Assembly: GCA_964234715.1 (NCBI GenBank)
Contig: OZ174291.1
DNA length: 64,000 bases
Reading direction: 5' to 3' (one strand)
Source of the DNA: Podarcis melisellensis
Taxonomy: Eukaryota
Positions 3,672 through 61,306 of the stretch are shown one piece after another. A model generated the notes under the pieces. It was not told where the DNA came from. It made no database searches and worked only from the letters and a program-made list of their open reading frames with translations. Position numbers and translations under genes: made by a program. How positions within the stretch are numbered: position 1 is the stretch's first letter; each line of letters begins with the position of its first letter.

Positions 3672-5098
3672 AAGTAAGTCATCCTTAAGGGAAGGGCTGT
3701 AGCTCTGGGACAGAGTAGCTGCTGTGCTGGCAGAAGATTCCCAATTCAATCCCTGGCATCTCCAGGTAGTGATGGGAATGCCACCCTTTCTGAAACCTCA
3801 GTGAGGGCTATAGCTCAATGGTAGATCATCTGGACCAGGGGCATCTTCTTAGGTTCCATTCCTACCCTAGACTATTGTAGGGGTATTGCCAATGATCTCC
3901 TGAGGCCAGTTAATACATCTTAATGAAGCTTTTGCATAGCATGTAACTCCATTCTTTGCTGTGTTTTCGCCACTATCCTCACTGAAACACCTCAGTAAAT
4001 AGTCTGAACCTTGTATATGTTGCAAGCTTTAAGAAGAGCCTGTTGCATCAGGCAAATGGCCCATCTAGTTCAGCATTAGAGTTTTAAAATACTAATACAC
4101 ATTTATACTAAATCTCCATGGTGTATTTGTGCTACCTAGTTCCTTTGAAGTATATCTCTTAGACTTCCACACACATATCTAGCTCTTTTGAATTTCCAAC
4201 GTCTTTCAACAGTTAGCTGGGGATTTAGAATGCCACATTCTCAACATGTTTTACCCTATATGCTTGGAGAGTCTACCTATGATATAAACCTAAAACTGAT
4301 TTAGTATTTCTTCTCTCTTTGGAAACAGAGATGTAATTCTGTGTGTGAAGGGGTAGAGATTTCTTCCAAGATCCTCATCTAAATAGCAGTATTGGGAGCT
4401 GCTCTTGGACCAGGCAAATGGCCCATGTAGTTCAGCATCCTTTTCTCACACAGGCCAATCAGAGGCCTGTTGAAAGCCCATCTGTAAGATCCACATGCAA
4501 TGGCACTCTCCCCTTCTGAAGTTTCCAGCAGCTGGTATTCAGAAGCGTGATGCTTGTAACTGGTGAGGCAGAGCATAACAATCATGGGATTGGCCATTAG
4601 ATCACCTAGCTCAGAACTCCCTGCGTTTCAACCTTGTGTTTCAACCTTGAGTCCACAGTGTTTCAACCTTGGTAGTCCACAGGTGTTACCGAACTAAAAT
4701 TACGTCCCTGCCCCTTTTCCTGGTTCTTCAGATACGGCAGTCAATTTCTGATAGGTCACTTCTCCCATCCCTCCATGAGAACTATTGTCAAGAATAAAAT
4801 GTCCCTACTGGCCTCAAAAGACTGGCAACACCAGCTTTTGATCTAAGAAGTTGGGAAATAAAGTTGCTCATTACATGTTCTGGTCTATCCCTTGCTTGAT
4901 ATACTGTGCCACTGAGAATACATAGGGTGTATTCCATGTTCCATGTATTCAATGTTTTTTCCAGGTAGACCTATTTAATCAATGGACATGTCTACTCAGA
5001 TTGGTAGTTGGATGCAATCCATGGTTTTCATTGCTGTTGTGAATTACAATGTTTCTTGGCTATAATATGTGCCTGCCTATGTCTTTCCAGACTCAACC

Positions 5099-5614
5099 AT
5101 GGCTAACTGTGGACCTTCCTGCGCCGTCCCATCTTGTGCTTCCACCCCAGTCGTTGGCTTTGGATCAGCCGGTAGTCTTGGCGGTGGTCTTGGCGGTGGC
5201 CTTGGTGGCGGATTTGGCGGTGGATTTGGCTATGGTTCTGGCTATGGCTATGGCTCCGGTGCCCTGGTTGGATCCGGCGTCCCTTCTGCCAGTCTTGGTA
5301 TTCTTTCTGGAGTCCAGCCTTCATGCGTCAACCAGATCCCACCAGCAGAGGTCGTCATCCAGCCACCTGCCGCCATCGTGACCATCCCAGGACCCATCCT
5401 CTCTGCCAGTTGTGAGCCCGTGGCTGTTGGAGGCAACACCCCATGTGCTGCTGGTGGTTATGGATCCGGATTTGGCAGCGGATTTGGTGGTGGATATGGC
5501 AGAGGGCTCTATGGTGGTGCAGGTCTTCTGGGGTCTAGCTCTGGTGGTTTGGGGCGCCGTGGCCATTATGGGTTTGTGGGGCGTAGAGGCAGCATCTGCT
5601 ATACCCCATGCTAA
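5099..5614 (+). CDS. Corneous beta-protein (beta-keratin) g1, 171 aa, Gly-rich
   Basis: MANCGPSCAVPSCASTP start; core PSCVNQIPPAEVVIQPPAAIVTIPGPILSASCEP; C-terminus GRRGSICYTPC. Acceptor tctttccag ends at 5090, so ATG 5099 is the start rather than ORF start 5069. AATAAA at 6119-6124. Confidence 0.95.
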   Translation: MANCGPSCAVPSCASTPVVGFGSAGSLGGGLGGGLGGGFGGGFGYGSGYGYGSGALVGSGVPSASLGILSGVQPSCVNQIPPAEVVIQPPAAIVTIPGPILSASCEPVAVGGNTPCAAGGYGSGFGSGFGGGYGRGLYGGAGLLGSSSGGLGRRGHYGFVGRRGSICYTPC

Positions 5615-6689
5615 GCTCTCACAGTCTGTCAACAAGGAGGAAAGAAAAAGAGATCTGTGGTGGACTATTTTGGTCTGATTTTAGATATGCTGAGCACCCA
5701 AACTCTCTAGGCAATCCCAATGGGAGCTGGGAGAGTGTTCTGCATCCCTTGTAATCAGGCCCATCTAGAACATGCAGCTGTTTCCAGTTTAATTTTATCT
5801 CACTTTCCCCTGCTAGTTACTATGATATTTATTTGCCTATGTCTCTTTGAAACACACCAATTTGCATTGGGAAGAAAAGCACAAGATCCATTCCCTAACT
5901 CTATGAAATTAGCATGCAAGTGTAAATATGTGTAATTGGGACTTAATGTAAAGGAAGGTGGGAAGAATGTTCTATACATGTAGAACACCCTACTCTTCTT
6001 CCAGCCTGAAAAAATAATTCTAAAGGAGAAGCTGTTCACTGGAATGTGTTCTTTTTTGCTTTATTGTCTTCCAGTATGCCTAGTATTCACTTGAATACTT
6101 TTACTGTTTGAAATTCCCAATAAAACTTTTTCTGCATCATAGCAATGGCTTTCTGGTTTTCCTTTTATGTGGCAGCACAATGCTATACATATGTATCAAG
6201 AAATAAGTTCCTTTCAATACAGTTTAGTGCAACTTACTCAAAAGTAAGTAGGTTCAGGGTCACAACCTTAAGAACACAACACATATCCTCTTGGACTGGT
6301 TCAAGCATCCACCACCCTGTTAACAGTGCAGCAAGTATTTCCAGAACTTGCCACCTAGATATCATCAGAAGCCTTGAATGTTGGAGGAGGTGCAGGAGAT
6401 TTCACGGGGGTACTTAACAACAGAGAATATTGATAAGGCATAGAACCAATAAATCCAGAGAGAGGTATCACTGTTGTTTTAAGATGGTCTGCCCAGCAGT
6501 TGGAAGAAACTTCAAATTTGGATTTGAGGAACATTTACTGAACATTCCATTCATTTCTTAGATTCTGTAGAACAAATTGATTTACTGATACCAAATAACT
6601 ATAAAAATTGACCGCTGGTTTTTTTTAGTCTCAAAGGATTTAACCAATTGTTCTAGTACCTCTGGTGTCTTAGATGCTAGGAAGGCTGC

Positions 6690-7130
6690 CAAAGGCCTGA
6701 GAGAAGAGGAATGTTCTTGCCTGGCACTTAAAGATCTGTAATGAAGGCATCTATTGAACCTCCTTGGGGAGAGCAGTCCAAAAACAGAGAACCACAAAAG
6801 AGAATGACCATTTTCTTGTTGCTGTCCTTCAGACCTCTCATGGAGGAGGTACCTGAAGAAGGGTCTCAAATGGTGATCACATGGACTGGGTCAGTTCATA
6901 TGGGCAGAGGTGGTCCTTGAGATATTGCAGTCCTAAGCCATTTAAGGCTTTATTGGGTCAGGAAACTAATTAGCAGCCTGTGGAGTCAGGCAAGGATTGG
7001 TGTTATATGCTCAAACTGTCCTGCCCCAGTGAGCAACCCAGCCACCAAATTCTGCACCAGCCGATGCTTCTGAACTGTTTTCAGAGGCAGCTTCACATAC
7101 AATGCATTGCAGAAATCTCACCTAGTGGTA
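6690..7130 (-). mobile_element. Old L2-like LINE fragment
   Basis: Degenerate similarity to the L2 3' region at 62034-62468 (for example taaggcttta and gcattgcag motifs). Confidence 0.45.
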
Positions 7131-8068
7131 AAGGCAACAGAGGTTAGGCCAATGATGGCCAAACTTGGCCCTCCAGGTTTGGGACTACCATTCCCATCAT
7201 CCCTGACCACTGGTTCTGTTAGCTAGGAATCATAGGAGTTGTAGTCCCAAAACAGCTGGAGGGCCAGGTTTGGGCATCACTGTGTTAGGCTATCATTGTT
7301 CAGATAGATGCACAGCTGGGTCACCAGCCTAATCTTATGGAAGGCACTCCATGCCACCAAGGCCAACAGAACCTCAAGTGACAGCAGTGGAACCAGAAGG
7401 ACCCTCCAAGCTACGTGTCTGTTCCTTCGGGGGCTATGTAACCTCATCAAGAGCAGGCCACCTCCCATCTATCCAGTCTACGGACCACCCACTAACTGTA
7501 CCTCAGTCTTATCTGGACTGAGCTTCAGTTTGTTGGCTCTCATCCAGTCCATTACCAAGGAAGAAAACTGCCCAGCACATCCACTGACAAGCCTTGAGAT
7601 ATAAAAGAGAAGTAGAGCTGTGTGTCATCAGCATTTAGCATATTCGGCGTCGTGGTGAAAGGCTCCCCCTGGCACCCACCCCCATTGTTGACCTTTGTTG
7701 GGGGGAGGACAGCGCTGCCGGCGTGGCTGGAGGAGGCGGGCAGGGGCTGGAGGGCAGCTGATGACATACTCCAAAACTCCAGGTAACCCCCTCAGCAGTT
7801 TCATGTGGATATGAAACAGCATGAGGCATAAAATCAAACCCTTCATGGACCTCACAGAGCCAAAGAGCACTCCCCAAGCATCAGCTACTGGAAGCCTAAG
7901 TAGGACAGGAACCACTGCAGAACAGTGCCACTCACACTTAACTTAGGCTGGATCTAGACACATCAAAGAAGCGTTTCCGTGAAATGTGTTGCAAACTTTG
8001 CATGAGAAATTGGGTTGGCAAAAACAGGACTCCACAGCGCCATTTGGTGTCACAGTGTTAGAATGCAT

Positions 8069-8300
8069 TGTTGTTGTTTAGTCGTTTAGTCGTGTCCGAC
8101 TCTTCGTGACCTCATGGACCAGAGCACGCCAGGCACTCCTGTCTCCCACTGCCTCCCGCAGCTTGGTCAGACTCATGTTGGTAGCTTCGAAAACACTGTC
8201 CCACCATCTCGTCCTCTGTCGTCCTCTTCTCCTTGTGCCCTCAAACTTTCCCAACATCAGGGTCTTTTCCAGGGAGTCTTCTCTTCTCATGAGGTGGCCA
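8069..8300 (-). mobile_element. BovB (RTE) LINE 3' fragment
   Basis: GHLMRREDSLEKTLMLGKFEGTRRRGRQRTRW...VTKSRTRLND; (CAA)n tail. Confidence 0.9.
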
Positions 8301-8419
8301 TACATAATAAGACAATGACCTATCCCCCACAACAGCATATGAATCAACAGCAGTTTTCATGACACATGAAGGAAGATAATGACATGATAAAATTCAAAAC
8401 AGTAACTATTAATTACGTA

Positions 8420-8767
8420 AAGGTAAATATAACCTGACCATTAGGTCCAGTCGTGACCGACTCTGGTGTTGCGGCACTCATCTCACTTTATTGGCCGAGG
8501 GAGCCAGCGTAAAGCTTCCGGGTCATGTGGCCAGCATGACTAAGCCGCTGCTGGCGAACCAGAGCAGCGCACGAAACGCCGTTTACCTTCCCGCCAGAGC
8601 GGTACCTATTTATCTACTTGCACTTTGATGTGCTTTCGAACTGCTAGGGTGGCAGGAGCAGGGACCGAGCAACGGGAGCTCACCCCATCATGGGGATTCA
8701 AACTGCCGACCTTCTGATCAGCAAGTCCTAGGCTCTGTGGTTTAACCCACAGCGCCACCCGCGTCCC
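8420..8767 (-). mobile_element. Sauria SINE (Squam1), full length
   Basis: tRNA-derived head GGGACGCGGGTGGCGCTGTGGG and ACCTTT tail; TSD attaattac(g/a)ta at 8408-8419 and 8769-8780. Confidence 0.9.
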
Positions 8768-10190
8768 AATTAATTACATAGCTATATGGAAAATGCATCT
8801 GGAAGACAAAATGTATTGAGGAGGTAGTGATCTGACATGGAGCCATTCCTGCCTCTGTTCCTTCCCCCTCCCTCACTCTTGTTAAGTTTTTTGATGGTGT
8901 GAGAACAGTATTTAATGTCCTAAAAATGTTGGGAGGAGGTGACCCCTCCCCAAATGCCTTAATCAGTTGGGAGGATAATGCTGGGTACCTTCTTTGATGT
9001 TGAACATTGTTTTGAGGAAGTTAGGCATTGGGAGGGGGTGGCTATCTATAAAATCGGATGGTTTGGGCAGAGGTTTTTTTTTTGTAGCTCATGCATGGAC
9101 TGATTGGCCGCAGAGCCGTGCAAACTGAGGCTACTTGGAAGAGTCACTTCGCCGCTTCTTGAGGGCTTCCAAGTGGCAGATTGAAGTGCGTGCTTGCTGT
9201 TTTAGAACAAAATCTTTTAATCTTCTCACTCACTTGTGTAGTTTGCATTGCTTCTGAATCTCATTTTAAAAGAACCACCTTGCCTTTGGCAAGACAACAG
9301 CCTTTCAAAATCCTATTAAAACTATTTAGTTTAATTAATTCAACAACATTTATGAACTTGATCTAGGGATACCAGCTTTTTACAACCTGGTAATTACATC
9401 TCCAATGCCCCTCTGCTACCTGCTTGCCTTTTAGCACCTCCTTGGATTACCCCACTGCCTCCCTTGGGGTGATTCCACTCACTTTGGGAGTTATTGCTTT
9501 AGCATTGCAAGTTAGTAATTCTAACACTTGGAACAAAGAGACGGGATGTTTGTGTTTGGCTTTCTAGGGATGCAACTTTGGAATATATGAAAGTGTACTG
9601 TGGCCTGTGTGAGAACTGGTCAAGCCTGGGACCACCTACCCAACCTCCATCTTACTTGCCTGAGGCTGCAATCCTAACCCTGCTTACCTGGCAGTAAGCC
9701 CCATTGAATTCAATAGAACTTAGACTGATTTGGTTAGGGCTGTGCTGTAATTGGGACCATGGTAGACAAAGGATGTGAAAGCTGTGGTCCTCCAGCTATT
9801 GAACAACTACATATAGTACCCACCAGTCCCAGCAAGTATGTCTGTTGGTCCGGGTGCCAAACCAAGAGAGTTGATTCAGAATGAACTTTAATGGAAATAT
9901 GAAAAGTGTCAAGCAGGCAATTGTAAAAGAAGCAGGACAGGAACAAGGCAAAGGCACACAGTATACAATGTGGCTTTCAACTTCTTCTTGGTCTGGAGGC
10001 TTTCGGGACACATAGTGGGAAAGCAGGAGAAAGGAAAGATGGCAGAGACTCGTGTAAATGCTGTTGGCTTAGATGACGGTCCCAGAAATTCAGATTTTCC
10101 AGACTCCAAGGTGAGACGCTCAATAATGGATAGGCATTCAGGGTCATTCAAATCATCACCACACAGATTTTCTTCACAAGTTCAATAGGC

Positions 10191-10310
10191 CTAAAAGCAC
10201 ACACTGCCACGATGCCCCTGCAGAGCCCTCCTTCCAAAGAGCCCACCCCTTCTCAGACTATAGCCCCAAGAGCTTCCAAGGAGGCCATCCCCATAGCCCC
10301 ACCCACCATG
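10191..10310 (-). pseudogene. Orphan CBP C-terminal tail (displaced original 3' end of g2)
   Basis: Translates HGGWGYGDGLLGSSWGYSLRRGGLFGRRALQGHRGSVCF*, homologous to the g7 tail. Followed by a g7-like 3'UTR and ATTAAA at 9887-9892. No core box or start codon. Confidence 0.85.
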
Positions 10311-11373
10311 GTCAGGTTACATTTACCTTTACGTAATTAATAGTTACTGTTTTGAATTTTATCATGTCATTATCTTCCTTCATGCGTCATGAAAACTGCT
10401 GTTGATTTATATGCTGTTCTGGGGGATAGGTCATTGTCATATTATGCCATGTATGTATGGCCACCTCATGAGAAGAGATGTTTCCCCCTATTGCTGAGCA
10501 GACCATCTTAAAACAACAGTGATACCTCTCTCTGGATTTTTGCTTCTTAGCCTTATCAATATTCTCTGTTGTTAAGTACCCCCGTGATATCTCTTTCACC
10601 TCCTCCAACATTCAAGGCTTCTGATGATATCTAGGTGGCAAGTTCTGGAAATACTTGCTGCACTGTTAACAGGGTGGTGGATGCTTGAACCAGTCCAAGA
10701 GGATATGTGTTATGTTCTTAAGGTTGTGACCCTGAACCGACTTACTTTTGAGTAAGTTGCATTGAACTGTATTGAAAGGAACTTATTTCTTGGTAGATGT
10801 GTATAGGATTGTGCTGCCACATAAAGGGAAAACCAGAAAGCCAGTGCTATGATGCAGAAAAAGTTTTATTGGGAATTTCAAACAGTAAAAGTATTCAAGT
10901 GAATACTAAGCATACTGTAAGCCAATAAAGCAAAAAAGAACACACTCCAGTGAACAGCTTCTCCTTTAGAATTATTTTTCAGGCTGGAGGAAGAGTAGGG
11001 TGTTCTACATGTATAGAACATTCTTTCCACCTTCCTTTACATTAAGTCCCAATTACACATATTTACACTTGCATGCTAATTTCATAGAGATAGGGAATGG
11101 ATCTTGTGCTTTTCTTCCCAATGCGAATTGGTGTGTTTCAAAGAGACATAGGCAAATAAATATCATAGTAACTAGCAGGGGAAAGTGAGATAAAATTAAA
11201 CGGGAAACAGCTGCATGTTCTAGATGGGCCTGATTTCAAGGGATGCAGGACACTCTCCCAGCTCCCATTGGGATTGCCTAGGGAGTCTGGGTGCTCAGCA
11301 TATCTAAAATCAGACCGAAATAGTCCACCGCAGATCTCTTTTTCTTTCCTCCTTGTTGACAGACCGTGAGAGC

Positions 11374-11862
11374 TTAGCATGGGGTATAGCAGATGCTGCC
11401 TCTACGCCCCACAAACCCATAATGGCCACGGCCCCCCAAACCACCAGAGCTAGACCCCAGAAGACCTGCACCACCATAGAGCCCTCTGCCAAATCCGCTG
11501 CCAAATCCGGATCCATAACCACCAGCGGCACATGGGGTGTTGCCTCCGACAGACACAGGCTCACAACTGGCAGAGAGGATGGGTCCTGGGATGGTCAGGA
11601 CGGCAGGAGGTGGCTGGATCACAACCTCTGCTGGTGGGATCTGGTTGACGCATGATGGGGCAACTCCTGCCAGGACTCCGAGGTTGGTTGCTCTTTCAGC
11701 ACCTCCATAACCATAGCCGAGACCTCCGTAGCCATAGCCGAGACCTCCGTATCCGTAGCCAAGACCTCCATACCCATAGCCAAGACCTCTTGCTGATCCA
11801 AACCCAACAGTGGGAGTGGAAGCACAGGATGGGACAGCACAGGATGGACCACAGTCAGCCAT
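11374..11862 (-). CDS. Corneous beta-protein g2, 162 aa (type-B 5' part fused to g1-type 3' part)
   Basis: MADCGPSC start, GYGYGGL repeats and CBP core; C-terminus nearly identical to g1. Acceptor ggtttcag at 11881-11882; polyA signal at 10865-10870. Confidence 0.95.
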   Translation of the reverse strand: MADCGPSCAVPSCASTPTVGFGSARGLGYGYGGLGYGYGGLGYGYGGLGYGYGGAERATNLGVLAGVAPSCVNQIPPAEVVIQPPPAVLTIPGPILSASCEPVSVGGNTPCAAGGYGSGFGSGFGRGLYGGAGLLGSSSGGLGGRGHYGFVGRRGSICYTPC

Positions 11863-12731
11863 TGTTGTGTAGAGGTGAGTCTGAAACCAAGAAGACCATG
11901 GGACAAAATGAACATGTGGAATGCCACTTCAATGGGGAATGCAGGGGACATTTGAATCAGCTGCCTTTGACAGCTCTAACACTATGCCCTAATGCTTGGA
12001 TTCTTTATTGTCTTCTCTTTCTTTCACCACAGCCCTTCTCTTCATTGTGGGTCCCAAATCCAAATACTGGCAGCTCCAGGAATGTCTGAGAATGTCATCT
12101 ATCTGAAACTCTGGAGAATAGTTTCCAGTCAGTGAGGACAATACTGAACTAGGAGGTCCAATGGTCTGTCTTGGTAAAAAGCAACTCCCTAAGTTTCTAT
12201 TTAAACCAGACCTTTAGATGGAACAATGAATGCAGGAAACTTTTTTTCTTTCCTAGAGGAAGGGCCATTACTCACTGGCAGAACATATGTTTTGCATTCG
12301 ATCCCTAGAATCTGCAGGTTGGGCTAGGAATGAATGAACCCTGGAGAGCCTCAGACGATCAGAGAGGACAATACTGAACTACATGGATGAATTGTAAGGC
12401 AGCTTCCTATATTATTACTTTCTTCATCTGCCAAATCTTCCATGAAGAACAAATGTATATTAGCCTATGCAATAAATACTGTACTTCCCTTATGCTGACT
12501 TCTGTTATTTATCTTCCTGACTGAATTTTTGCTAAGGTTACATTGCTGGGGAAATATGAAAAACATTCCGTGGAATGCTGTCTTGTGTCTCAAGCCCAAT
12601 GCATGGAGAGTCATGAATGCTAAATTTGTACTTTACAATGAGGAAAGCTGGATTTGCACAACTTGTGATAGAATAAGACTCTCTCACCAGGAAAACAAAA
12701 ATGTCTAGTTTTAAAAGAATGCTATAAGATG

Positions 12732-18567: not shown

Positions 18568-18810
18568 ATTGCTGGCAGCCTGCCGCGAGGGAGAGGGATC
18601 AGATTCCCTGAAGCCTGACACTTCCCTTCTTCTCTTTCTATGGTTCATTTTACATTTCTTATATCCCTGCATATCTTACAAAAACTATACCAATCGGTTT
18701 TCCATTATTACATCCATCAAAATATTATTTGCATTGCTGAATTTATCTTCATGCTGCCAGAGTTTCCAGCTGTACACATGCAATTTTATTTTTTAGATTC
18801 ATCTTCAGCC

Positions 18811-19320
18811 ATGGCTAACTGTGGCCCATCCTGTGCCGTGCCATCCTGTGCTTCCACCCCCACAGTTGGATTTGGATCTGCAGCTCTTGGTAGACGCGGA
18901 GGTCTTGGCTACGGATACGGAGGTCTTGGCTACGGCAATGGAGGTCTCGGCTACGGCTATGGAGGTCTCGGCTACGGCTATGGAGGTGCTGAAAGAGCAG
19001 CCAATCTCGGTGTCCTGGATGGAGTCATCCCTTCATGCGTCAACCAGATCCCACCAGCAGAGGTCGTCATCCAGCCACCTCCCAGTGTCCTGACCATCCC
19101 AGGGCCCATCCTCTCTGCCAGCTGTGAGCCTCTGTCTGTTGGAGGCAACACTCCATGTGCTGTTAGTGGTTCTGGAATCGTAGGAGGCTATGGCTATGGT
19201 GGGTGGGGCTATGGGTCTGGCCTCCTTGGAAGCTCTGGGGGCTGGGGCTATGGTTTGGGCTATGGGAGGGGAGCACTCCTTGGAAGGAAGTTCGGGCGTC
19301 GTGGTAGCATCTGTTCTTAG
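18811..19320 (+). CDS. Corneous beta-protein g3, 169 aa (type A, unrearranged start)
   Basis: Acceptor ttttag|attcatcttcagccATG (AG ends 18796); CBP core; tail GRGALLGRKFGRRGSICS; AATAAA 19546-19551. Confidence 0.95.
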   Translation: MANCGPSCAVPSCASTPTVGFGSAALGRRGGLGYGYGGLGYGNGGLGYGYGGLGYGYGGAERAANLGVLDGVIPSCVNQIPPAEVVIQPPPSVLTIPGPILSASCEPLSVGGNTPCAVSGSGIVGGYGYGGWGYGSGLLGSSGGWGYGLGYGRGALLGRKFGRRGSICS

Positions 19321-23011: not shown

Positions 23012-23521
23012 TTATGCACAGATGTTACCACGACGCCCGAACTTCCTTCCAAGGAGTGCTCCTCTCCCATAGCCCAAACCATAGCCAAAGCCCCCAGAGC
23101 TTCCAAGGAGGCCAGACCCATAGCCCAAGCCCCCATAGCCATAGCCTCCTACGATCCCGGAACCACCAACTGCACATGGAGTGTTGCCTCCAACAGCCAC
23201 AGGCTCACAGCTGGCAGAGAGGATGGGCCCTGGGATGGTCACAACGCAGGCAGGTGGCTGGACCACGACCTCTGCTGGTGGGATTTGGTTGATGCAGGAT
23301 GGGATAACTCCTGCCAGGACTCCGAGGTTGGCTGCTCTTTCAGCACCTCCATATCCATAGCCGAGACCACCATATCCGTAGCCAAATCCTCCATTTCCAT
23401 AGCCGAGACCTCCCAATCCATAGCCGAGACCACCATAGCCAAGACCTCCTGCTGATCCAAACCCAACAGTGGGGGTGGAAGCACAGGATGGGACAGCACA
23501 GGATGGACCACAGTCAACCAT
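23012..23521 (-). CDS. Corneous beta-protein g4, 169 aa
   Basis: MVDCGPSC start at 23521 after acceptor at 23540-23541; CBP core; tail GRKFGRRGNICA; polyA signal 22785-22790. Confidence 0.95.
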   Translation of the reverse strand: MVDCGPSCAVPSCASTPTVGFGSAGGLGYGGLGYGLGGLGYGNGGFGYGYGGLGYGYGGAERAANLGVLAGVIPSCINQIPPAEVVVQPPACVVTIPGPILSASCEPVAVGGNTPCAVGGSGIVGGYGYGGLGYGSGLLGSSGGFGYGLGYGRGALLGRKFGRRGNICA

Positions 23522-29585: not shown

Positions 29586-30077
29586 ATGGTTGACTGTGGT
29601 CCATCCTGTGCTGTCCCATCCTGTGCTTCCACCCCCACTGTTGGGTTTGGCTCAGCAGGAGGTCTTGGCTATGGTGGTCTCGGCTATGGATTGGGAGGTC
29701 TCGGCTATGGAAATGGAGGATTCGGCTACGGATATGGTGGTCTTGGCTATGGAAATGGAGGTGCTGAAAGAGCAGCCAACCTTGGAGTCCTGGCAGGAGT
29801 TATCCCATCCTGCATCAACCAAATCCCACCAGCAGAGGTCGTGGTCCAGCCACCTGCCTGCGTTGTGACCATCCCAGGGCCCATCCTCTCTGCCAGCTGT
29901 GAGCCTGTGGCTGTTGGAGGCAACACTCCATGTGCTGTTGGTGGTTCCGGGATCGTAGGAGGCTATGGGGGCTTGGGCTATGGGTCTGGTCTCCTTGGAA
30001 GCTCTGGGGGTTTCGGCTATGGTTTGGGCTACGGGAGGGGAAGGAAGTTCGGGCGTCGTTTTAGCATCTGTGCATAG
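29586..30077 (+). CDS. Corneous beta-protein g5, 163 aa
   Basis: Acceptor AG 29566-29567; CBP core; tail GRGRKFGRRFSICA; AATAAA 30302-30307. Confidence 0.95.
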   Translation: MVDCGPSCAVPSCASTPTVGFGSAGGLGYGGLGYGLGGLGYGNGGFGYGYGGLGYGNGGAERAANLGVLAGVIPSCINQIPPAEVVVQPPACVVTIPGPILSASCEPVAVGGNTPCAVGGSGIVGGYGGLGYGSGLLGSSGGFGYGLGYGRGRKFGRRFSICA

Positions 30078-30493
30078 GCCAATTAAACCTAAGAAACATA
30101 TTATGAACTGATAATCAGAGAGCTTGATACAGATCCATTGGGTGTGGTTCAAAAGAGCTAAATCCCAGGATCCACTGCTGAAGTTGAACCCTCTTCTTCC
30201 CCCACCTCTTTGCTTTGAAGTCCAGAAAACTAAGATGCTTATATGCTAAATTTCTTCTGTATTTCTCATACAGCTATCAATGTCATTTCTTGAATCTTTT
30301 CAATAAAGCTTTTGGCGCATTACAGTAACCCATGTGTGTTGGTTTTTGTAACACCTGACCTCAGTTACACACAGCAAGCCATCCAGCTGACTGAAGTAAT
30401 TTTTGTCTAAATTAAAACGGGAATGTGTCTCAAGGCATGTTTGCCAACAAAAATTTGTCAGATGTTTGGAGGTTTTATACTTCAACTTTAAGA

Positions 30494-30634
30494 GATTCTG
30501 GGCTGGTAGGAAGCTATGGCTATGGGTCAGGTCTCCTTGGAAGACATTTTGGTGGCTACCTTGGAGGTCTGAGGAGGGGTGGGCTCCTTGGAAGGAAATC
30601 CCTGCTGGGATGTTGTGGTCATACATACTTTTAG
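30494..30634 (+). pseudogene. Orphan CBP C-terminal tail (displaced original 3' end of g5)
   Basis: DSGLVGSYGYGSGLLGRHFGGYLGGLRRGGLLGRKSLLGCCGHTYF*, collinear with the g7 tail. g7-like 3'UTR follows, with ATTAAA at 30932-30937. Confidence 0.88.
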
Positions 30635-31720
30635 ATATATTGAAGTCTTGAAGAACATATTTGTGATGATGACAGGAATGACCCTGAATGGGTGAAGATG
30701 ATGCAGTGTCTTGTCCTGGGACCATCCTAGAAGCCAACATCTTTTGCATGATTGATTGATTGATTGATTGATCTTTTGCATGAATTTCAGCCATGTTTCC
30801 TTCCTCCTTCTTTCCCCCTTGAAAGTATTTAATCCATGAATGAGTTCAGAGCTACATTGTACTAAATCCGCCTTTGCTTTGTTCATTTCTGCTATCTGTA
30901 CACTTGTCTACTTGACACTATCCATATTTGCATTAAAAAGCATTCTGTCATCGACTCGCTCCCTCTCCCTCTCTTGTTTGATTTGGCATCTTATGGTGAA
31001 AATTCCCCCAAAAAGAATACCAGGGTAGTCTCCCATGTTTGAAAAATCCTGGAATATGTTGGTCTAGAAGACCCTGAGCTAACTGAGAACTTAAGGGGCA
31101 CTTAATAGGTTCAGAAGGCAGTGCACGAGTGGGGAAACATTGGCCTTCCCGATATTGCTGACCACCACACCTGGCATTAGGTATATTTTGTTTCAGACCT
31201 CATAATTGCTATTTCTTTTTTAAAAAAACTTTTTAAATTCAAAATTAAAACAAAACATATTATCCAGAAACATATCATCCTTATTTTCCCCCCATTTTTC
31301 CTCCCTCCCCCCACCCTCCCGTACAAAACCTACCCACCCCCACCCCCCGGCTTCCCTCAGTTCCAGTCTTTGATTTCTCTGAGAATGCTGTTTTCTGCAT
31401 GTTACAAAGTTGTATAGATCCTCAAACTATTTAGCTGATTATTATAAATGGCAGCTGATTTTGCCATTTCAGCGTATTCTATCAGTTTCATAAGCCATTC
31501 CTCCTTAGTTGGTAATCCTTTCCAATCCACTTCTGACTTCCAACTCTACAACGATATGATTCTATGAATATGCACACCACTCCTCTCCTCATTTGAGTTT
31601 CCCAGACACTGGTATTCAGAGAGATATTAGCTGCAACAGTGTAAGGGGAATATAGTCATCATGACTAATGACCACTGATTGCCTCCCCACCCAACCAATG
31701 AATTTGCCTAATCCTCTCTT

Positions 31721-35834: not shown

Positions 35835-36338
35835 CTATGAACAGATGCTAAAACGACGCCCGAACCTCTTTCCAAGGAGTGCTCCCCTCCCGTAACCCAA
35901 ACCATAGCCGAAGCCCCCAGAGCTTCCAAGGAGACCAGACCCAAAGCCCAAGCCCCCATAGCCTCCTACGATCCCGGAACCACCAACGGCACATGGAGTG
36001 TTGCCTCCAACAGCCACAGGCTCACAGCTGGCAGAGAGGATGGGCCCTGGGATGGTCAGAACGGAGGCAGGTGGCTGGATCATGACCTCTGCTGGTGGGA
36101 TCTGGTTGATGCAGGATGGGGCAACTCCTGCCAGGACTCCGAGGTTGGCTGCTCTTTCAGCACCTCCATAGCCATAGCCGAGACCACCAAAACCGTAGCC
36201 GAATCCTCCATTTCCATAGCCGAGACCTCCCAATCCATAGCCAAGACCACCATAGCCAAGACCTCCTGCTGAGCCAAACCCAACGGTGGGGGTGGAAGCA
36301 CAGGATGGGACAGCACAGGATGGACCACAGTCAACCAT
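35835..36338 (-). CDS. Corneous beta-protein g6, 167 aa
   Basis: CBP N-terminus and core; tail GKRFGRRFSICS; acceptor 36357-36358; polyA signal 35653-35658. Confidence 0.95.
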   Translation of the reverse strand: MVDCGPSCAVPSCASTPTVGFGSAGGLGYGGLGYGLGGLGYGNGGFGYGFGGLGYGYGGAERAANLGVLAGVAPSCINQIPPAEVMIQPPASVLTIPGPILSASCEPVAVGGNTPCAVGGSGIVGGYGGLGFGSGLLGSSGGFGYGLGYGRGALLGKRFGRRFSICS

Positions 36339-44245: not shown

Positions 44246-44755
44246 ATGGTTGACTGTGGTCCATCCTGCGCTGTCCCATCCTGTGCTTCCACCCCCACTG
44301 TTGGGTTTGGTTCAGCAGGAGGTCTTGGCTATGGTGGTCTCGGCTATGGATTGGGAGGTCTCGGCTATGGAAATGGAGGATTCGGCTACGGATATGGCGG
44401 TCTCGGCTATGGCTATGGAGGTGCTGAAAGAGCAGCCAATCTCGGAGTCCTGGCAGGAGTTGCCCCATCCTGCATCAACCAGATCCCACCAGCAGAGGTC
44501 GTGGTCCAGCCACCTGCCTCCGTTCTGACCATCCCAGGGCCCATCCTCTCTGCCAGCTGTGAGCCTGTGGCTGTTGGAGGCAACACTCCATGTGCCGTTG
44601 GTGGTTCCGGGATCGTAGGAGGCTATGGCTATGGGTCTGGTCTCCTTGGAAGCAATTTTGGTGGCTTCCTTGGAGGTTCCCATTTTGGTCTGAGGAGGGG
44701 TGGGCTCTTTGGAAGGAAATCCCTGCTGGCACGTCGTGGTAGTGTGTGCTATTAA
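44246..44755 (+). CDS. Corneous beta-protein g7, 169 aa (type B with its own tail)
   Basis: CBP core; distinct tail GSNFGGFLGGSHFGLRRGGLFGRKSLLARRGSVCY; acceptor AG 44226-44227; ATTAAA 45055-45060. Confidence 0.95.
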   Translation: MVDCGPSCAVPSCASTPTVGFGSAGGLGYGGLGYGLGGLGYGNGGFGYGYGGLGYGYGGAERAANLGVLAGVAPSCINQIPPAEVVVQPPASVLTIPGPILSASCEPVAVGGNTPCAVGGSGIVGGYGYGSGLLGSNFGGFLGGSHFGLRRGGLFGRKSLLARRGSVCY

Positions 44756-49868: not shown

Positions 49869-50360
49869 CTATGAACAGATGCTAAAACGACGCCCGAACT
49901 TCCTTCCCCTCCCGTAGCCCAAACCATAGCCGAAACCTCCAGAGCTTCCAAGGAAACCAGACCCAAGGCCCAAGCCCCCATAGCCTCCTACAATCCCGGA
50001 ACCACCAACTGCACATGGAGTGTTGCCTCCAACAGCCACAGGCTCACAGCTGGCAGAGAGGATGGGCCCTGGGATGGTCACAATGCAGGCAGGTGGCTGG
50101 ACCACGACCTCTGCTGGTGGGATCTGGTTGATGGGTTTAGGGATAATCCCATCTAGGATGCCAAGGTTGGCTGCTCTTTCAGCACCTCCATTTCCATAGC
50201 CGAGACCACCAAATCCATAGCCGAATCCTCCATTTCCATAGCCGAGACCTCCCAATCCGTAGCCGAGACCACCATAGCCAAGACCTCCTGCTGAGCCAAA
50301 CCCAACGGTGGGGGTGGAAGCACAGGATGGGACAGCACAGGATGGACCACAGTCAACCAT
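49869..50360 (-). CDS. Corneous beta-protein g8, 163 aa
   Basis: CBP with variant core entry GILDGIIPKPINQIPP; acceptor 50379-50380; polyA signal 49658-49663. Confidence 0.95.
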   Translation of the reverse strand: MVDCGPSCAVPSCASTPTVGFGSAGGLGYGGLGYGLGGLGYGNGGFGYGFGGLGYGNGGAERAANLGILDGIIPKPINQIPPAEVVVQPPACIVTIPGPILSASCEPVAVGGNTPCAVGGSGIVGGYGGLGLGSGFLGSSGGFGYGLGYGRGRKFGRRFSICS

Positions 50361-55653: not shown

Positions 55654-56145
55654 ATGGTTGACTGTGGTCCATCCTGCGCTGTCCCATCCTGCGCTTCCAC
55701 CCCCACTGTTGGGTTTGGCTCAGCAGGAGGTCTTGGCTATGGTGGTCTCGGCTATGGATTGGGAGGTCTTGGCTATGGAAATGGAGGATTCGGCTATGGA
55801 TTTGGTGGTCTCGGCTATGGAAATGGAGGTGCTGAAAGAGCAGCCAACCTTGGCATCCTAGATGGGATTATCCCTAAACCCATCAACCAGATCCCACCAG
55901 CAGAGGTCGTGGTCCAGCCACCTGCCTGCATTGTGACCATCCCAGGGCCCATCCTCTCTGCCAGCTGTGAGCCTGTGGCTGTTGGAGGCAACACTCCATG
56001 TGCAGTTGGTGGTTCCGGGATCGTAGGAGGCTATGGGGGCTTGGGCCTTGGGTCTGGTTTCCTTGGAAGCTCTGGAGGTTTCGGCTATGGTTTGGGCTAC
56101 GGGAGGGGAAGGAAGTTCGGGCGTCGTTTTAGCATCTGTTCATAG
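55654..56145 (+). CDS. Corneous beta-protein g9, 163 aa (protein identical to g8)
   Basis: ORF translation identical to g8; acceptor AG 55634-55635; AATAAA 56351-56356. Confidence 0.95.
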   Translation: MVDCGPSCAVPSCASTPTVGFGSAGGLGYGGLGYGLGGLGYGNGGFGYGFGGLGYGNGGAERAANLGILDGIIPKPINQIPPAEVVVQPPACIVTIPGPILSASCEPVAVGGNTPCAVGGSGIVGGYGGLGLGSGFLGSSGGFGYGLGYGRGRKFGRRFSICS

Positions 56146-57227
56146 ACCAATTAAACCTGAGAAGCATATCCTGAACTGATAATCAGAGAGCTTGATACAG
56201 ATCTATCGGCCATGGTTCAGAAAAGCTGAATTCAAGCAATCACTCCTGGAATTCATCCTCCGTTCTTTGCTTCAGAGTGCAGAAGAAAAAAGATCCTTCT
56301 ACACCGATTTTCTTCTTTGCCCCTTTCAATGCTCTTACTTTGACCTTTTCAATAAAGCTTGTTCTGCATTCTGATAACCTGTTTGTCTTGGTTTTTAAAT
56401 GTAAAGCCTCAGTTCCACATAGCAAGGTGTCCAGGGCCTCAGCTGTCTGAAGCAGTTTTTGGCTAAACTAAAATTGGAACATTTGCAGGACATCTTTCTC
56501 TCTGGCCCCCTTAATGGTATAGTTCTATGAGGTTAAAATAAGGTACATTCACATTGAGAGAATTATCCTTTCCCCCTTTTTCAAAACAAGTCCCCTCTTA
56601 GAGTGCCTCAAACCATTATTTATTCAGAGAAACAACAGTCATAATAGCTGGATAATCTTTTGTAGTTTTGCAACATTTGCATACGTACACAGTGTGAAAT
56701 GTATTGTGGACTACAGCTATTGTAATCAATATGTTACAAGACTTTGGACAATAACATATTTTTGGTGGGTGTTAATGTAGTCAAATGCTGCAGGATTATC
56801 CAGCCTCTCAGTCAGATACTGTATTTTGATAACAGTTTTAAATTATTGCATACACAAGTTAAAGAAATATATTAAGCATTTAAAGCTATCCAAACTAGTG
56901 GCAATCGCCACATCTTCTGGTACTGAATCTAGAAGTTTATGCATTTTGTGAAGAACTATATCCTTTTGCTTCCACTGAATTCTGCAAGATTCTGGTTCCC
57001 TGCATGACCCCTGCTTCTAGCAAGATGAGAAAGGGAGAAAAAAGTCTCTCTATACATTTTCTCGAATTTTGAGAGACAGAAATCCTCAGAATGTCCACAA
57101 GGTGGTTGTGTTAGCAGACCAATCAGCCTTGAAGAGGAGGAGAGAGGCAAGCAAACTGCACAGAGAAAGGTGCGAAGTCAGGTCAGTAGCATCTTAGTGC
57201 CCCAGCTCCCCAGTTAAAATGGCAAAA

Positions 57228-57362
57228 NNNNNNNNNNNNNNNNNNNNNNNNNNNNNNNNNNNNNNNNNNNNNNNNNNNNNNNNNNNNNNNNNNNNNNNNN
57301 NNNNNNNNNNNNNNNNNNNNNNNNNNNNNNNNNNNNNNNNNNNNNNNNNNNNNNNNNNNNNN
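57228..57362. other. Assembly gap (135 N)
   Basis: Run of N. Confidence 1.
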
Positions 57363-57859
57363 ACCCAACCAGAGCTGGGCTCAGGGCGGCTAACACCAGT
57401 AAAATTACAATAAAAACATACCAGAAAAAAACCCAATTTAAAATACAGGTTAAAATTCAATTGAAAATGCAGCCTCATTTTAAAAGTAGCCCATAGATCA
57501 AAACTATAAGGGGAGAGAAACATAAGGGTCAGACTGAGTCCAAACCAGTCCAAGCCCTCCCAAAAGGTCAAACTCTGTAAAATGAGGTTTGAGATAGCCG
57601 CAAACTTTGACACTGAGTTAATGGAGGAAATTTAATGAATAACAACACACAGTGGGCATCTCTAGACACAGGTACAGGAATCACTTTATTAAGAGAAGAT
57701 CTAAATACTTCCACAAATATGTTTCCTCACAAAACAGCAAATGTCACAGATGGCATCCAGATTAGCTCCCAGTGTCTGAGGGAAAGATTTACTGGAGAGG
57801 GAAAGAAGAGCCAAAATTCTTAGGCAAAATATACTGGGAGCCGGAGAGAATGGTTGACT

Positions 57860-58007
57860 GGTTCTGGGCTGGTAGGAGGCTATGGCTATGGGTCTCCTTG
57901 GAAGCAATATCGGTGGCTAGCTTGGAGGTTCCCTTTATGGTCTGAGGAGGGGTGGGCTCTTTGGAAGGAAGGCCCTGCTGGGATGTCATGGTAGTGTGTG
58001 CTTTTAG
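57860..58007 (+). pseudogene. Orphan, decayed CBP C-terminal tail (displaced original 3' end of g9)
   Basis: GSGLVGGYGYG, then a 5-nt deletion versus g7, then LLGSNIGG*LGGSLYGLRRGGLFGRKALLGCHGSVCF* (internal TAG 57918-57920). 3'UTR with AATAAA 58294-58299. Confidence 0.88.
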
Positions 58008-60969
58008 ATATATTGGACTCTTGAAGAACAAATGTGTGGTGATGACAGGAATGACACTCAACGGAAAAAGATGATGCAGATCCATTACTGAGTGTCTCAT
58101 TCTGGATTCTGAGCTTTTGGGACCATCATCAAGCCAACAGCTTTTAAATGGCTCTCAGCAACCTTTCCTTACTCCTTTTCAAGTCTTTCCTCAAAGTCTG
58201 TAGACCAGTAATAAGTTCAGAGCCACGTTCCATTGTGTGTGCCTTTTCCTTGTTCATGTCTGCTTCTTGTCCAATTGCCCACTCAATATTTTCAATAAAA
58301 CTCATTCTGAATTCAAATATTTCTCTCTTTCTTGGTTTGTTACCTGGTCTTATTTCTCAAAAGGAAGGGGGGGAGGGTATTATCTCGTGCTGGAACAGTT
58401 TTGGAGTATTTTGTCCTAGGGAGTTCCTGAGCTAACAGAGAACCGAAGGGAGGACATACTAGGCTCATAAGTTAGTGGAAGAGTGGGAAACTGCATGAAT
58501 TCAATATTTATCGCATTTGTATCCCACCTTTTCTTCAGGGAGCTCAAGGTAGAACATACAGTCCTCCTCCTCATTTTATCCTTACAACAATCCTGTGAAT
58601 TTTGTTAGGCTGAGAGTGAGTTGACTGGCACAAGCTCACCCAGTGACCTTCATGGCCAAGTGGGGCTTTGAACCCTATTTCCCCATGTCTTAGTCCAACA
58701 CTCTAATCACTACACAACACTGGCTCCTTGGGCTTCCCAAATGTTGCTAAGGTACAACTTCAACCATCCCTGGCCACTGGTTGTACTTTGTTTTGGACCT
58801 AATATTTCTTAAAGTCTAACAGGAACCAAGTTAAATCTTCTTTGGGGTGGAAGGCGGATGCTCTCTGTCTCTGTGTTACCTGTCCAAAGAGAGATCCTTA
58901 CTGTTGACTTAGGAGCATCCCTTCATTATTGAGGACTTGGAGGATAGGTATATAGGAAGCTGCTTTACACTGAATCACACTGTTGGGTCTATCTAGATCA
59001 GTGCTGTCTTTAGTGACCGGCAGTGGTTTTCCGAGCTCGACTTGGAGATGCCAGGGAGTGCCTTCTGCATGCAAAGCAGGTGCTCTACCATGGCAATATG
59101 GTCCTTCCTGTAGAAGTAAAATAGAATCTCAGTCCTTATGATTCTGAATAAAAGGCTGGTTTAAGTAGGGGCATCAGGAGCTACTTCGTATGGCGTGAGA
59201 CCATTAGTTCATACAGCTCTGTATTGTCTATGCTGACTGTCAGTAGCTATCCAGGGTTTCCGATAGGGTTCTTTCCCAGCCCTGGTTGGAGATGCAATGG
59301 ATTGAAACTTGGATATTCTGCATGCAAAGCAGGTACTCTGCAACTGATATGTGGCTCTGTGGAATCTTAGTCAAAGGCAAGTGGAACAAGGGGTCTTCTC
59401 ACTGCTCACGTCTCAGGGATTGTGCTGAGGAGGGCTGCACTGAGGAGCAATGGTGGGAGTCTCCCCCTCCCCCTGCTCCTGAATCTTCCCAGGAGCAGTG
59501 GGACAGTATATGTCAGGAGCGTAGCTGAGCCAAGAGATGAAGGAGATGGAAGAGAAACAGGGTTTGGCTCTCAATATGACAGCCTGCAATTAGAGTTGGA
59601 GGAAGTGGGCTCGGCCCCCCTTCCCCAAGTGTTCACTGAGTTAGTTAGAGCAGACACAGAAAGCTCGCAAGACGAGGGAGGGGAAGAGATAGACGGCACT
59701 GGAGGGGTTGCTAAGCAACAATCAGATAGGCAGAGGACTGAGAGTTCATCCTTGGACAGTGTAGATTTCCCCCTTCCCTCTGCTCACGTCCAAAGAGCTG
59801 AAAAGGTCAGATTGCAACAATAGTGCAAAAGGGGAAAGGTGGGACGTTGGCGTTTTTCCTGTTGTGACACAAGTGATTTCGCAGAGTGACCAGACGATTT
59901 TTATGGAGCAGAGGGCTGTAGCCATGCTCTGATTGTATTGTGAATAAATAAATGAACAGCTAGGAGGAGGAGAACTGGGAGAGAGAGAGAGTTAATGGAC
60001 TCTCTTTCACTGGAAAGCGTCCATCCGCTCAGCCAAAGGTCAAGGAGAGCAGATAAGGTGGCAGCACAGAAAGCAAAGTGGTTGTGAGATCAGGTTGCAA
60101 GACATGGATGTGACGTGGATGACAAGAGGGGAAGTGGGTGGAATCCTTAATTGGCAACACCTTCATTCCTAGAAATGGATTCTTTGTTCTTTCACTGTGA
60201 TCATTAAAGTTTCTAACTGGTAAGAGACTCCTTTTGCTTTGTTCTGCTTATCTGCTGCCAAAGGAGGGGGCGGGGAGCCAAGTCCCTGAAGTCTGACCAG
60301 GTCTGTAACCTGAGGTACCACTGTATATCTGTTCTCATATATATCCCATATATATTTTGAAAATGCAGATTTTTTACATTAATCCTGCTAATGTCTTCAC
60401 CTGTTTACAGTACGTTTGTAAATACTCAATAAACCATTTCTGTTCCTTTCTAAATATAGATCTATTTATATTGATTTCTTAATGATGCCTAATTTCAAGG
60501 CACCTCTACCGGTGATGGGTTCTGACACTTTTGGCATGTGTAATCTCCCTCCCCTGGCAGACTGCTGGGAGAAGGAAGGAGCTGTTGGCTGGTGCTTGCA
60601 TAGAAAAATGCCTGGGAAGCACTTGCATGCTGCCTTGCCTTCCACGATGGAAGAGAGGATGAACAGAAACACAATGAAACAAATGCTTCAAGTAATTTGC
60701 CCAGAATGCCCTAGCACAACGACACTTCATAATGACTTAGAGAGGAAGAAATCTTGCCACAATTTCTTTCGAGTAGCGCTCAGCACTAGCAGTGGCAAGA
60801 ACACAGCTTTCAGGTTATATCTTTTTCAGGGTGGTGGGTTATGTCTTGGTGGGGGTGTAGCTGATGCTCCAGATGCTTCAGCTGTTGGGTGGTCTCCTAC
60901 TGAGTTCACGGATGTATGCTAATCATGTAGGTTAATTTCAACTCGACACGTGGTGGATAATTGCTGAAT

Positions 60970-61306
60970 TTGTTGTTGTTCTTTAGTTGTTTAGTCGTGT
61001 CCGACTCTTCGTGACCCCATGGACCAGAGAACGCCAGGCACTTCTGTCTTGCGCTGCCTCCCACAGTTTGGTCAAACTCATGTTGGTAGCTTCGAAAACA
61101 CTGTCCCACCATCTCATCCTCTGTCGTCCCCTTCTCCTTGTGCCCTCCATCTTTCCCAACATCAGGGTCTTTTCCAGGGAGTCTTCTCTTCTCATGAGGT
61201 GGTCATACATAATAAGACAATGACCTATCCCCCACAACAGTCTTCTCTTCTCATCAGGTGGCCAAAGTATTGGAGCCTCAGCTTCACGATCTGTCCTTCC
61301 AGTGAA
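60970..61306 (-). mobile_element. BovB LINE 3' fragment with internal insert and TSD
   Basis: BovB ORF end; TSD ggata(a/g)ttgctgaat at 60955-60969 and 61307-61321. Confidence 0.9.

Follow-up and report, generated by a model that had tools for sequence, protein, structure and literature searches.

A chimeric corneous beta-protein gene of Podarcis melisellensis carrying an inverted, discontinuous copy of the 3' end of its convergent neighbour

One-sided or coupled repair and template switching of the fork stalling and template switching/microhomology-mediated break-induced replication type (FoSTeS/MMBIR) are established processes (PMC4888836, PMC2621351). In the former, one-sided invasion proceeds as synthesis-dependent strand annealing (SDSA) that is ended by end joining (Belmaaza and Chartrand, 1994, as cited in PMC4888836), and gap repair may copy non-homologous sequence from ectopic sites (Nassif et al., 1994, as cited in PMC4888836). 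Template switching in break-induced replication and in gene conversion is referred to in work cited within both reviews (PMC4888836, PMC2621351), and internal jumps have been documented for low-processivity repair synthesis (PMC4888836). Ectopic repair from one homologous end is well known from reporters and human disease; old, fixed cases are rarer, especially those with all parts still readable. Here, such a candidate is described in a stretch of 64,000 nt from Podarcis melisellensis (contig OZ174291.1; hereafter the window), which holds nine paralogous corneous beta-protein (CBP, or beta-keratin) genes, g1 to g9. The second of these, g2, is a chimera: its native N-terminus and beta core are joined to the C-terminal arm of the convergent neighbour g1, ending in CYTPC, and to a 3' untranslated region (3'UTR) and poly(A) signal of g1 type. 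The original C-terminal codons of g2 lie stranded further downstream as an orphan tail.

The locus was resolved by an inverted-repeat search, self-BLAST of the window, base-level alignments, diagnostic sites scored against g3-g9 and maximum-likelihood (ML) trees. Read in the direction of the gene, it comprises the following parts, with J0, J1 and J2 denoting the junctions:

11374-11862, minus strand: g2, the recipient gene, an intact open reading frame (ORF) of 162 codons
11537-11862, minus strand: native 5' part of the g2 coding sequence (CDS), residues 1 to about 108; protein identity with the outgroup reaches residue 112
11536-11553, minus strand: J0, homologous switch in the core box, equivalent to g1 5423-5440; last native site 11553, first unbroken donor site 11536
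10477-11536, minus strand: first g1-derived block, with the new C-terminus, the stop codon at 11374-11376, the g1-type 3'UTR and a copy of the poly(A) signal at 10870-10865
10477-10480, minus strand: J1, skip junction with 4-nt microhomology
10308-10480, minus strand: second g1-derived block, with a stub of a BovB-like element, unique flank, a copy of a left target-site duplication (TSD) at 10341-10333 and a stub of the tail of a short interspersed element (SINE)
10307-10309, minus strand: J2, outer junction, non-homologous, 2 nt shared
10191-10307, minus strand: coding part of the orphan tail, 38 open codons and a stop (GGWGYGDGLLGSS...RGSVCF), the original g2 C-terminus
9874-10190, minus strand: native g2 3'UTR of the orphan tail, with matches of 66-72% to the g7 3' flank and to the displaced tails of g5 and g9

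According to the inverted-repeat search and self-BLAST, 5091-6513 is the reverse complement of 10477-11870 and 8272-8441 that of 10308-10486, so that the inverted g1 copy inside g2 totals about 1.2 kb. No other full-length copy of either block exists within the window, and the other paralogues match only the first ~370 nt, the 5' part of the CDS (75% for g1, 82-86% for g2). At about 50 sites upstream of J0, g2 agrees with g3-g9 against g1, with about five donor-type sites in the same part. Downstream of J0, g2 carries about 75 g1-only sites in a run that is unbroken from 11536, with one native-type exception. With some 75 consecutive g1-only sites below the switch against some 50 native sites above it, the chimeric pattern is beyond chance by far. 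A 40-nt exact match between g1 and g2 lies immediately upstream of J0; three isolated donor-type sites found upstream of the junction (11604, 11584 and 11566) may represent patchy conversion. Residues 113-162 of g2 are identical to g1 in 49 of 50 positions. The partitioned ML trees agree with this division: the 5' partition unites g2 with g3 as sisters (support 98/99), well apart from g1 on its long branch; in the 3' partition it is g1 that pairs with g2 (100/100, near-zero branches), and the orphan tail groups with g7 in the other clade.

These results bear out the chimera of the original prediction and adjust its limits. The first inverted block had been placed at about 10480-11600 opposite 5380-6513; the match stands, while the left limit marks only the point at which core-box paralogy rises, the true switch lying some 50-60 nt further in. 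At J1, the tetranucleotide CTTC is present at both donor breakpoints (6510-6513 and 8278-8281) and g2 reads CATC at 10480-10477; the skip, put earlier at ~1.8 kb, extends from g1 6510/6514 to 8277/8281 and measures 1,768 nt. The collinearity claimed for 10308-10478 and 8281-8441 is retained in the alignment in the slightly refined form of 8278-8441 against 10480-10308, with 4.8% divergence and one 9-nt insertion in g2. At J2, the donor can be followed to 8441 (...AACCTGACCAT), after which GGTGGGTGGGGCTATGG... is read, a motif that is preceded in g3 by ...GGCTAT. Native g2 sequence is back from 10307 (...CCTGACCAT joined to GGTGGGTGGGG). A join of the form ctgac-CAT-ggtggg had been proposed here. 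Its position (10308/10307) is correct, but CAT is no 3-nt insert: comparison of donor ...GACCAT with native ...GGCTAT followed by GGTGGG identifies it as donor sequence of which AT alone is common to both.

On the donor side, the copied tract runs past the end of g1 into two transposable elements (TEs), the nearer of which is a fragment of a long interspersed element (LINE):

5099-5614, plus strand: g1, the donor gene, ORF with core box, 171 amino acids, C-terminus ...GRRGSICYTPC
5440-6513, plus strand: donor segment 1, with the g1 3' CDS, the 3'UTR, AATAAA at 6119 and ~390 nt past it; aligns to g2 11536-10477
6514-8277, plus strand: skipped stretch, present beside g1 only, holding most of the BovB-like fragment; 1,768 nt with the 4-nt overlap
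8068-8300, minus strand: 5'-truncated BovB-like LINE fragment, 3' end at 8068, truncation point at 8300
8278-8441, plus strand: donor segment 2, with 23 nt of BovB stub, 116 nt of unique flank including the left TSD and 24 nt of SINE tail
8417-8768, minus strand: complete Sauria-type SINE, TSD-flanked, 3' tail at the left; aligned to four other copies in the window

We take the element at 8068-8300 to be a BovB and that at 8417-8768 to be a Sauria SINE, both by resemblance only. The SINE is flanked by a perfect 9-nt TSD (ATTAATTAC, at 8408-8416 and 8769-8777) and has at least six further copies. The BovB-like fragment matches three other copies in the window at 90-94%; because two of these extend beyond the position equivalent to 8300, and because this minus-strand element has its 3' end at 8068, 8300 is its 5'-truncation point. 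Bov-B LINEs and Sauria SINEs are associated in squamates, Podarcis included (PMC13295347). A Pfam search of the BovB-like ORF and of four ORFs of the skipped stretch gave no domain, and a tRNA scan of the SINE region gave none.

The g2 copy holds 23 nt of the BovB-like element (8278-8300), taken from its truncated 5' end and without the LINE 3' end, and the last 24 nt of the SINE tail (8418-8441), which abut directly on glycine codons and are accompanied by the copy of the left TSD; clipped pieces of ~20 nt each had been anticipated. Since the elements are complete beside g1, with a TSD, and since retrotransposition could not have produced the stubs to which they are reduced in g2, g1 is the donor. 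It follows equally that the copying took place after both insertions. The g1 arrangement is therefore the original and g2 the copy, and the event is later than the LINE and SINE insertions, in accordance with the direction and relative date that had been proposed for a donation by the convergent neighbour. Had the shared segment been a dispersed repeat, copies would be expected elsewhere, but 8301-8417 is unique sequence, and by self-BLAST neither it nor 5615-6513 has a second full copy in the window except the g2 block. Furthermore, g1 still has its own tail, and its orthologues in Lacerta and Zootoca carry a like tail type. The transfer was non-reciprocal, because the g1 tail is unchanged and present twice and the native g2 tail is still on the g2 side; a reciprocal inversion by non-allelic homologous recombination (NAHR) is excluded, as the g1 tail has been retained and doubled.

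The template was DNA. The copied tract passes the g1 AATAAA at 6119 by ~390 nt and then takes in sequence 2.2 kb further on; it has neither a poly(A) tract nor a TSD of its own, and no GT-AG pair was found at the J1 skip in any of the five possible phasings. An RNA-mediated retrocopy and RNA-templated repair are excluded by the run past the poly(A) signal, the TE sequence and the lack of A-tail, TSD and GT-AG, and a spliced intron at the skip is rejected as no GT-AG is present. The two segments diverge equally from g1 (4.1±0.7% for segment 1, 4.8±1.7% for segment 2), which indicates that they were copied together.

Two further observations concern the sequence beside g1. The skipped stretch contains an imperfect palindrome at 7150-7282, 72% self-complementary over ~133 nt, which could conceivably have been an obstacle to repair synthesis. 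Elsewhere in the window, the BovB-like copy at 60973-61300 is 94% identical to the copy at 8068-8300 and is followed by 35 nt identical to the unique g1 flank 8301-8335, past which the element restarts for 24 nt (TCTTCTCTTCTCAT.AGGTGG.CA duplicated). On sequence grounds, a one-sided conversion of this LINE copy by that of the g1 locus is suggested.

The orphan tail reveals what g2 carried before. Translation from 10307 on the minus strand gives GGWGYGDGLLGSSWGYSLRRGGLFGRRALQGHRGSVCF and a stop, and each of the 38 codons has its counterpart in the aligned C-terminal ends of g3 and g7. Native g2 has lost only ~36 nt (12 codons), which would have linked its last native-type residue (...NTPCA) to this tail. 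The tail lies ~560 nt past the g1-type poly(A) signal of g2 and is presumably untranscribed; at a divergence of ~5%, a frame of 38 codons that is still open is unremarkable. At position 10133, in the orphan 3'UTR, organisms B, D and E (see below) carry 13 extra bases (GCATGATCTTCAC, plus strand) which organism A is without.

The check for an uninterrupted g2 in related lacertids, suggested with the original prediction, turned up proteins of this type in Zootoca vivipara, Lacerta agilis and Podarcis lilfordi. Of the full-length matches to g2 in the database, the best is Z. vivipara XP_034954763 (P0002, 162 amino acids), which consists of g2 residues 1-112 (108/112 identical), 12 residues (VGGSGIVGGYGY) and an orphan-type tail (GGWGYG plus 26/31, or 32/38 overall), so that 112, 12 and 38 add up to 162. 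The 90% cluster of this protein also holds L. agilis XP_033030764.1 (P0091) and P. lilfordi CAI5798429.1 (P0090). Both of these have the 12-residue link, which is physically missing from the window, and they are therefore not gene models spliced over the insert. For each half of g2, these three proteins give the best matches, with 102-108 identical residues over 105-112 aligned in the N-terminal part and 32-33/38 identical in the tail. In the window itself, no uninterrupted g2-like copy is present, only the nine genes and three orphan tails. Judged by the P. lilfordi protein, the event appears to be younger than the split from that lineage.

Contigs of four public runs were compared over 9600-12200; among RNA runs, none covers the stretch. 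For organism A, the source of the window, an independent individual (run X4, record 9, 9600-10360) has a single contig across J2, and so have three organisms with other labels: B (record 18, 9683-10418), D (record 28, 10260-10469) and E (record 3, 9980-10418). The event accordingly took place before A, B, D and E diverged. In B, a contig also spans J1 (record 19, 10389-10511, reaching 31 nt past the junction), and the two junctions occur together wherever both could be assessed, namely in the assembly of A and in organism B. A 712-nt contig of D (record 29) fits 10480-10787 and continues with 407 unlike bases. As it shows g1-type states at 10539, 10543, 10548/9 and 10594, and as g1 must depart at exactly 10480, it is most simply the g1 locus of D, an unskipped g2 being the alternative. 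An assembly artefact is rejected: the arms differ by 1-6%, and junctions are bridged in other individuals and organisms.

Taken as a whole, the locus is probably the product of a single, non-reciprocal, DNA-templated repair event in which one-sided homologous invasion was followed by end joining. One-sided invasion or template switching is indicated by the homology junction, the tract with donor flank, the 4-nt discontinuity, the 2-nt junction and the unchanged donor; the break as trigger, the geometry of strand invasion and the timing of the skip are what we infer. Before the event, g2 would have been an ordinary CBP gene of 162 residues, tail-to-tail with g1 at a distance of ~4.6 kb. A break or collapsed fork would have arisen in its glycine-rich C-terminal coding region, and the minus strand, with its 3' end in g2 core-box sequence, would have invaded the homologous core box of g1 (J0). 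Synthesis would have run rightwards through the C-terminal codons, 3'UTR and poly(A) signal of g1, towards g2, until the new strand was released inside the SINE tail at g1 8441, 1.87 kb short of the break, and was end-joined to the other broken end with 2-nt microhomology (J2). In the process, some 36-50 nt of g2 C-terminal coding sequence would have been overwritten and the original C-terminal codons and 3'UTR left stranded.

The origin of the skip is divided almost evenly, a template jump in low-processivity synthesis being given slightly better than an even chance and a later microhomology-mediated deletion slightly worse than one. In the interval of ±20 nt around J1, g1 and g2 differ six times (P=0.007, the interval being pre-specified), and the 9-nt insertion is 22 nt off, with no mutation excess at J2. 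Such a cluster is expected from error-prone synthesis at a switch and would count for a jump during the event. A variant of the same history, in which the founding event copied the whole of g1 5440-8441 (~3 kb) and the 1,768-nt gap arose in g2 as a separate, later deletion by microhomology-mediated end joining (MMEJ), is held to be somewhat short of even. The deletion would perhaps have been favoured because an inverted repeat of 3 kb around a spacer of 1.9 kb is unstable. MMEJ would account for the 4 nt of microhomology at J1 equally well, joins made by polymerase theta are also known for locally raised mutation density, and record 29 of D, departing at 10480 with its 407 unlike bases, might be just such an unskipped g2. 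Against this, J1 accompanies J2 in every assessable case, no unskipped carrier was seen among these, the D contig is more simply explained as g1, and internal jumps in low-processivity synthesis have precedent (PMC4888836).

A replicative origin, in which a fork stalled or collapsed in g2 switched to the inverted g1 by FoSTeS/MMBIR and then made two further microhomology switches, is regarded as possible but rather doubtful. It has in its favour the junction grammar of human duplication-inverted triplication-duplication rearrangements (DUP-TRP/INV-DUP; PMC11293582; bioRxiv 10.1101/2023.10.02.560172; PMC2621351), the gain of a neighbouring segment in inverted orientation, the presence of three junctions on a single molecule and the J1 mutation cluster. 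However, SDSA-type repair predicts the same product, so that the sequence cannot separate the two, and no intervening segment is duplicated or triplicated, 8442-10307 being single copy in the window. It is very improbable that the chimera arose in two steps, with an inverted g1 duplicate landing beside an old gene and having its 5' half converted by a g3-like neighbour, the orphan then being the remnant of another, destroyed gene. Gene conversion is active in the cluster (g4/g5 and g8/g9), and the patchy donor sites upstream of J0 would suit such a course; yet one set of outgroup proteins provides the best matches both for the N-terminal part of g2 and for the orphan, P0002 sums exactly to 162 residues, and at least two extra events plus a coincidence would be needed. 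Trivial explanations, comprising an assembly chimera, independent repeat insertion, a retrocopy or an NAHR inversion, have a negligible probability. Long-read assembly errors can yield inverted near-identical blocks and TEs are abundant here, but the arms are 1-6% apart, J2 is bridged in an independent individual and three organisms, no other full copy of 8301-8417 or 5615-6513 exists in the window, A-tail, TSD and GT-AG are lacking and the g1 tail is retained.

Several points weigh against repair by a single one-sided event as preferred here. The break or stalled fork, and with it the mechanism, is deduced from junction anatomy only. The J1 mutation cluster has P=0.47 when taken as the maximum of an unplanned scan, and a later deletion of the polymerase-theta type also fits. 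J1 is bridged only in A (in the assembly) and in B, and the D contig departs at exactly 10480. The orthology of the uninterrupted outgroup proteins would follow from best similarity in both halves, not from synteny. Finally, later conversion, suggested by the upstream donor-type sites and by roughly doubled contig depth (see below), may have caused the present divergence and the present position of J0 to differ from the founding state.

Such later exchange between the arms is compatible with their divergence. The identity of g1 and g2 is 68% in the N-terminal glycine-rich coding part, 91% in the core box and 98.8% in the rest of the CDS, then 96.9% in the 3'UTR, 94.3% beyond AATAAA and 95.2% in the second segment. 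Within the copied arms, divergence thus rises from 1.2% in the CDS to 3.1% in the 3'UTR and 5.7% past the poly(A) signal, a gradient that fits either constraint or continuing arm-to-arm conversion. Contigs of B, D and E covering 10740-11550 (and g1 5430-6250) have about twice the single-copy k-mer depth; in the source genome, the arms are 1-3% apart over this part. The doubled depth is suggestive only, since contigs cannot separate the copies, of arms that are nearly identical and of homogenisation that continued in B, D and E.

Side observations were made in the same contigs. Over 10554-10669, the independent individual of A (run X4) has two contigs, one identical to the window (depth 6.3) and one with 6 differences in 116 nt (depth 10.8); the latter state is common to D and E and unlike g1 of the window, and the contig stems either from a g2 haplotype of strong divergence or from an allele that was converted differently. 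The glycine-rich repeat just past the core box (g2 11485-11492, g1 5485-5496) is prone to indels: g2 is without 12 nt of g1, and contigs of A, B and D carry three different 12-nt inserts at nearly one spot near 11485-11492, in what would also be the break region. At 9663-9722, contig depth reaches hundreds to thousands with many loose ends, as for a high-copy short repeat, and a related piece near 10793 (~10790-10800) accounts for spurious joints in the read table that 'skip 1084'.

The remaining seven genes of the array are:

18805-19320, plus strand: g3
23012-23521, minus strand: g4
29586-30077, plus strand: g5
35835-36338, minus strand: g6
44246-44755, plus strand: g7
49869-50360, minus strand: g8
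55654-56145, plus strand: g9

The orientation of the nine genes alternates strictly (+ - + - + - + - +), so that any gene and its nearest neighbour form an inverted repeat and an inverted template is the default choice in the array. Their products are glycine/tyrosine-rich proteins of 160-170 residues in which the core box IPPAEVVIQPP...TIPGPILSASCEP, the central beta-sheet, lies between Gly/Tyr-rich arms; all nine ORFs are uninterrupted and each CDS lies in one exon. The sauropsid 'Keratin' family of Pfam (PF02422, gathering cut-off 25 bits) is matched by g1, g2, g3 and g7 with 34.2, 37.1, 38.7 and 35.5 bits, respectively. The closest database relatives of the cluster proteins are CBPs of lacertids and other squamates: g3 differs from a Podarcis muralis protein (P0003) in a few residues only, and g1 is 74% identical over its whole length to a protein of L. 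agilis (P0007) with an identical type of C-terminal end. The chimeric g2 protein and the exact g1/g2 protein were absent from the protein collection, in which close relatives of the source are possibly unannotated. An Rfam scan of the whole window gave zero matches. The sole N run of the window is at 57228-57362.

Compared with described systems, g2 resembles one-sided invasion in that J0 lies inside homology and J2 shares 2 nt, the tract carries donor flank, the donor is unchanged and the discontinuity falls at a 4-nt repeat. In contrast to the known cases, which stem from induced breaks in reporters or transgenes, it is a fixed germline event, ~5% diverged and present in several organisms, that has left an intact chimeric gene. 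FoSTeS/MMBIR and DUP-TRP/INV-DUP share with it a first junction in inverted paralogues, microhomology at later junctions and an inverted gain (PMC2621351, PMC11293582, PMC4352052), as well as several switches in cis and, possibly, mutations near a junction. Unlike these, it involves 1-3 kb instead of tens to hundreds of kb and is old and fixed, not de novo and pathogenic. The duplicated or triplicated interval that is the hallmark of DUP-TRP/INV-DUP is missing, as both 8442-10307 and 6514-8277 are single copy in the window.

With ectopic gene conversion and concerted evolution in the epidermal differentiation complex (EDC), g2 has in common a non-reciprocal transfer between neighbouring CBP paralogues and signs of homogenising arms. 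Classical conversion has homology at both ends and leaves lengths unchanged, whereas g2 gained 1.2 kb of foreign flank and crossed subfamilies (g1 type into g3/g7 type); and where homogenising conversion levels differences, the g2 event made a new combination of C-terminal domain. The wall-lizard EDC paper treats gene conversion in general terms only (PMC11431283). A search of its supplement for three short motifs gave no occurrence, which is uninformative on g2 of P. muralis, and no description of chimeric CBP genes or orphan tails was found in the literature. Arm-to-arm conversion is a feature of gene-bearing palindromes, such as the ampliconic palindromes of sex chromosomes. Like these, g1 and g2 have inverted arms containing the 3' parts of convergent genes, a spacer, and an identity that is higher near coding sequence. 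The differences are that their arms measure ~1.2 kb, one of them broken by the skip, and that the spacer, on the present map, amounts to 3.8 kb (6514-10307, less the second block of 164 nt).

The wider array contains comparable arrangements. In a gene-relative comparison, g2, g5, g7 and g9 have one common native tail type, which is in place only at g7. The native tails of g5 and g9 are displaced by ~0.55 and 1.85 kb (tblastn matches at 30497-30610 and 57854-58004 in the regions 29586-30960 and 55654-58312) and sit behind blocks copied from the inverted head-to-head neighbours g4 and g8, with g4/g5 94% identical over ~970 nt and g8/g9 95% identical over ~1.7 kb and 90-95% over ~2.2 kb. Since the g5 and g9 orphans start at one g7-equivalent position (~+356 to +359), they may share one ancestral event, while the g2 orphan, having a different start and a different donor, is independent of them. 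With displaced tails in three of the four genes of this native tail type, the process may recur in the cluster. It has therefore been considered, tentatively and as a rather unlikely proposition, that the CBP array is a repeated birthplace of gene-bearing palindromes, by a break in the indel-prone glycine-rich codons, one-sided repair from the nearest, always inverted neighbour, whose tail and flank would be captured and the old tail orphaned, and later homogenising of the arms; g1/g2 (arms of 1.2 kb, 1-6% diverged, one of them interrupted by the skip), g4/g5 (arms of ~1 kb, 94% identical) and g8/g9 (arms of ~2.3 kb, 90-95% identical) would then be successive stages. If so, C-terminal domains would be shuffled between CBP subfamilies, a domain-swapping route to new scale proteins, and if the process is recurrent, the cluster would be a natural series for the origin of palindromes and of chimeric structural proteins.

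The class of mechanism is already known, and g2 is a well-resolved, natural and datable instance of it, of moderate interest for CBP evolution. It indicates that inverted arms, in effect a proto-palindrome, can arise between convergent genes, and that a CBP gene can gain the C-terminal domain, 3'UTR and poly(A) signal of another subfamily in one step with its frame left open, so that new proteins can be gained by the gene family of reptile scales.

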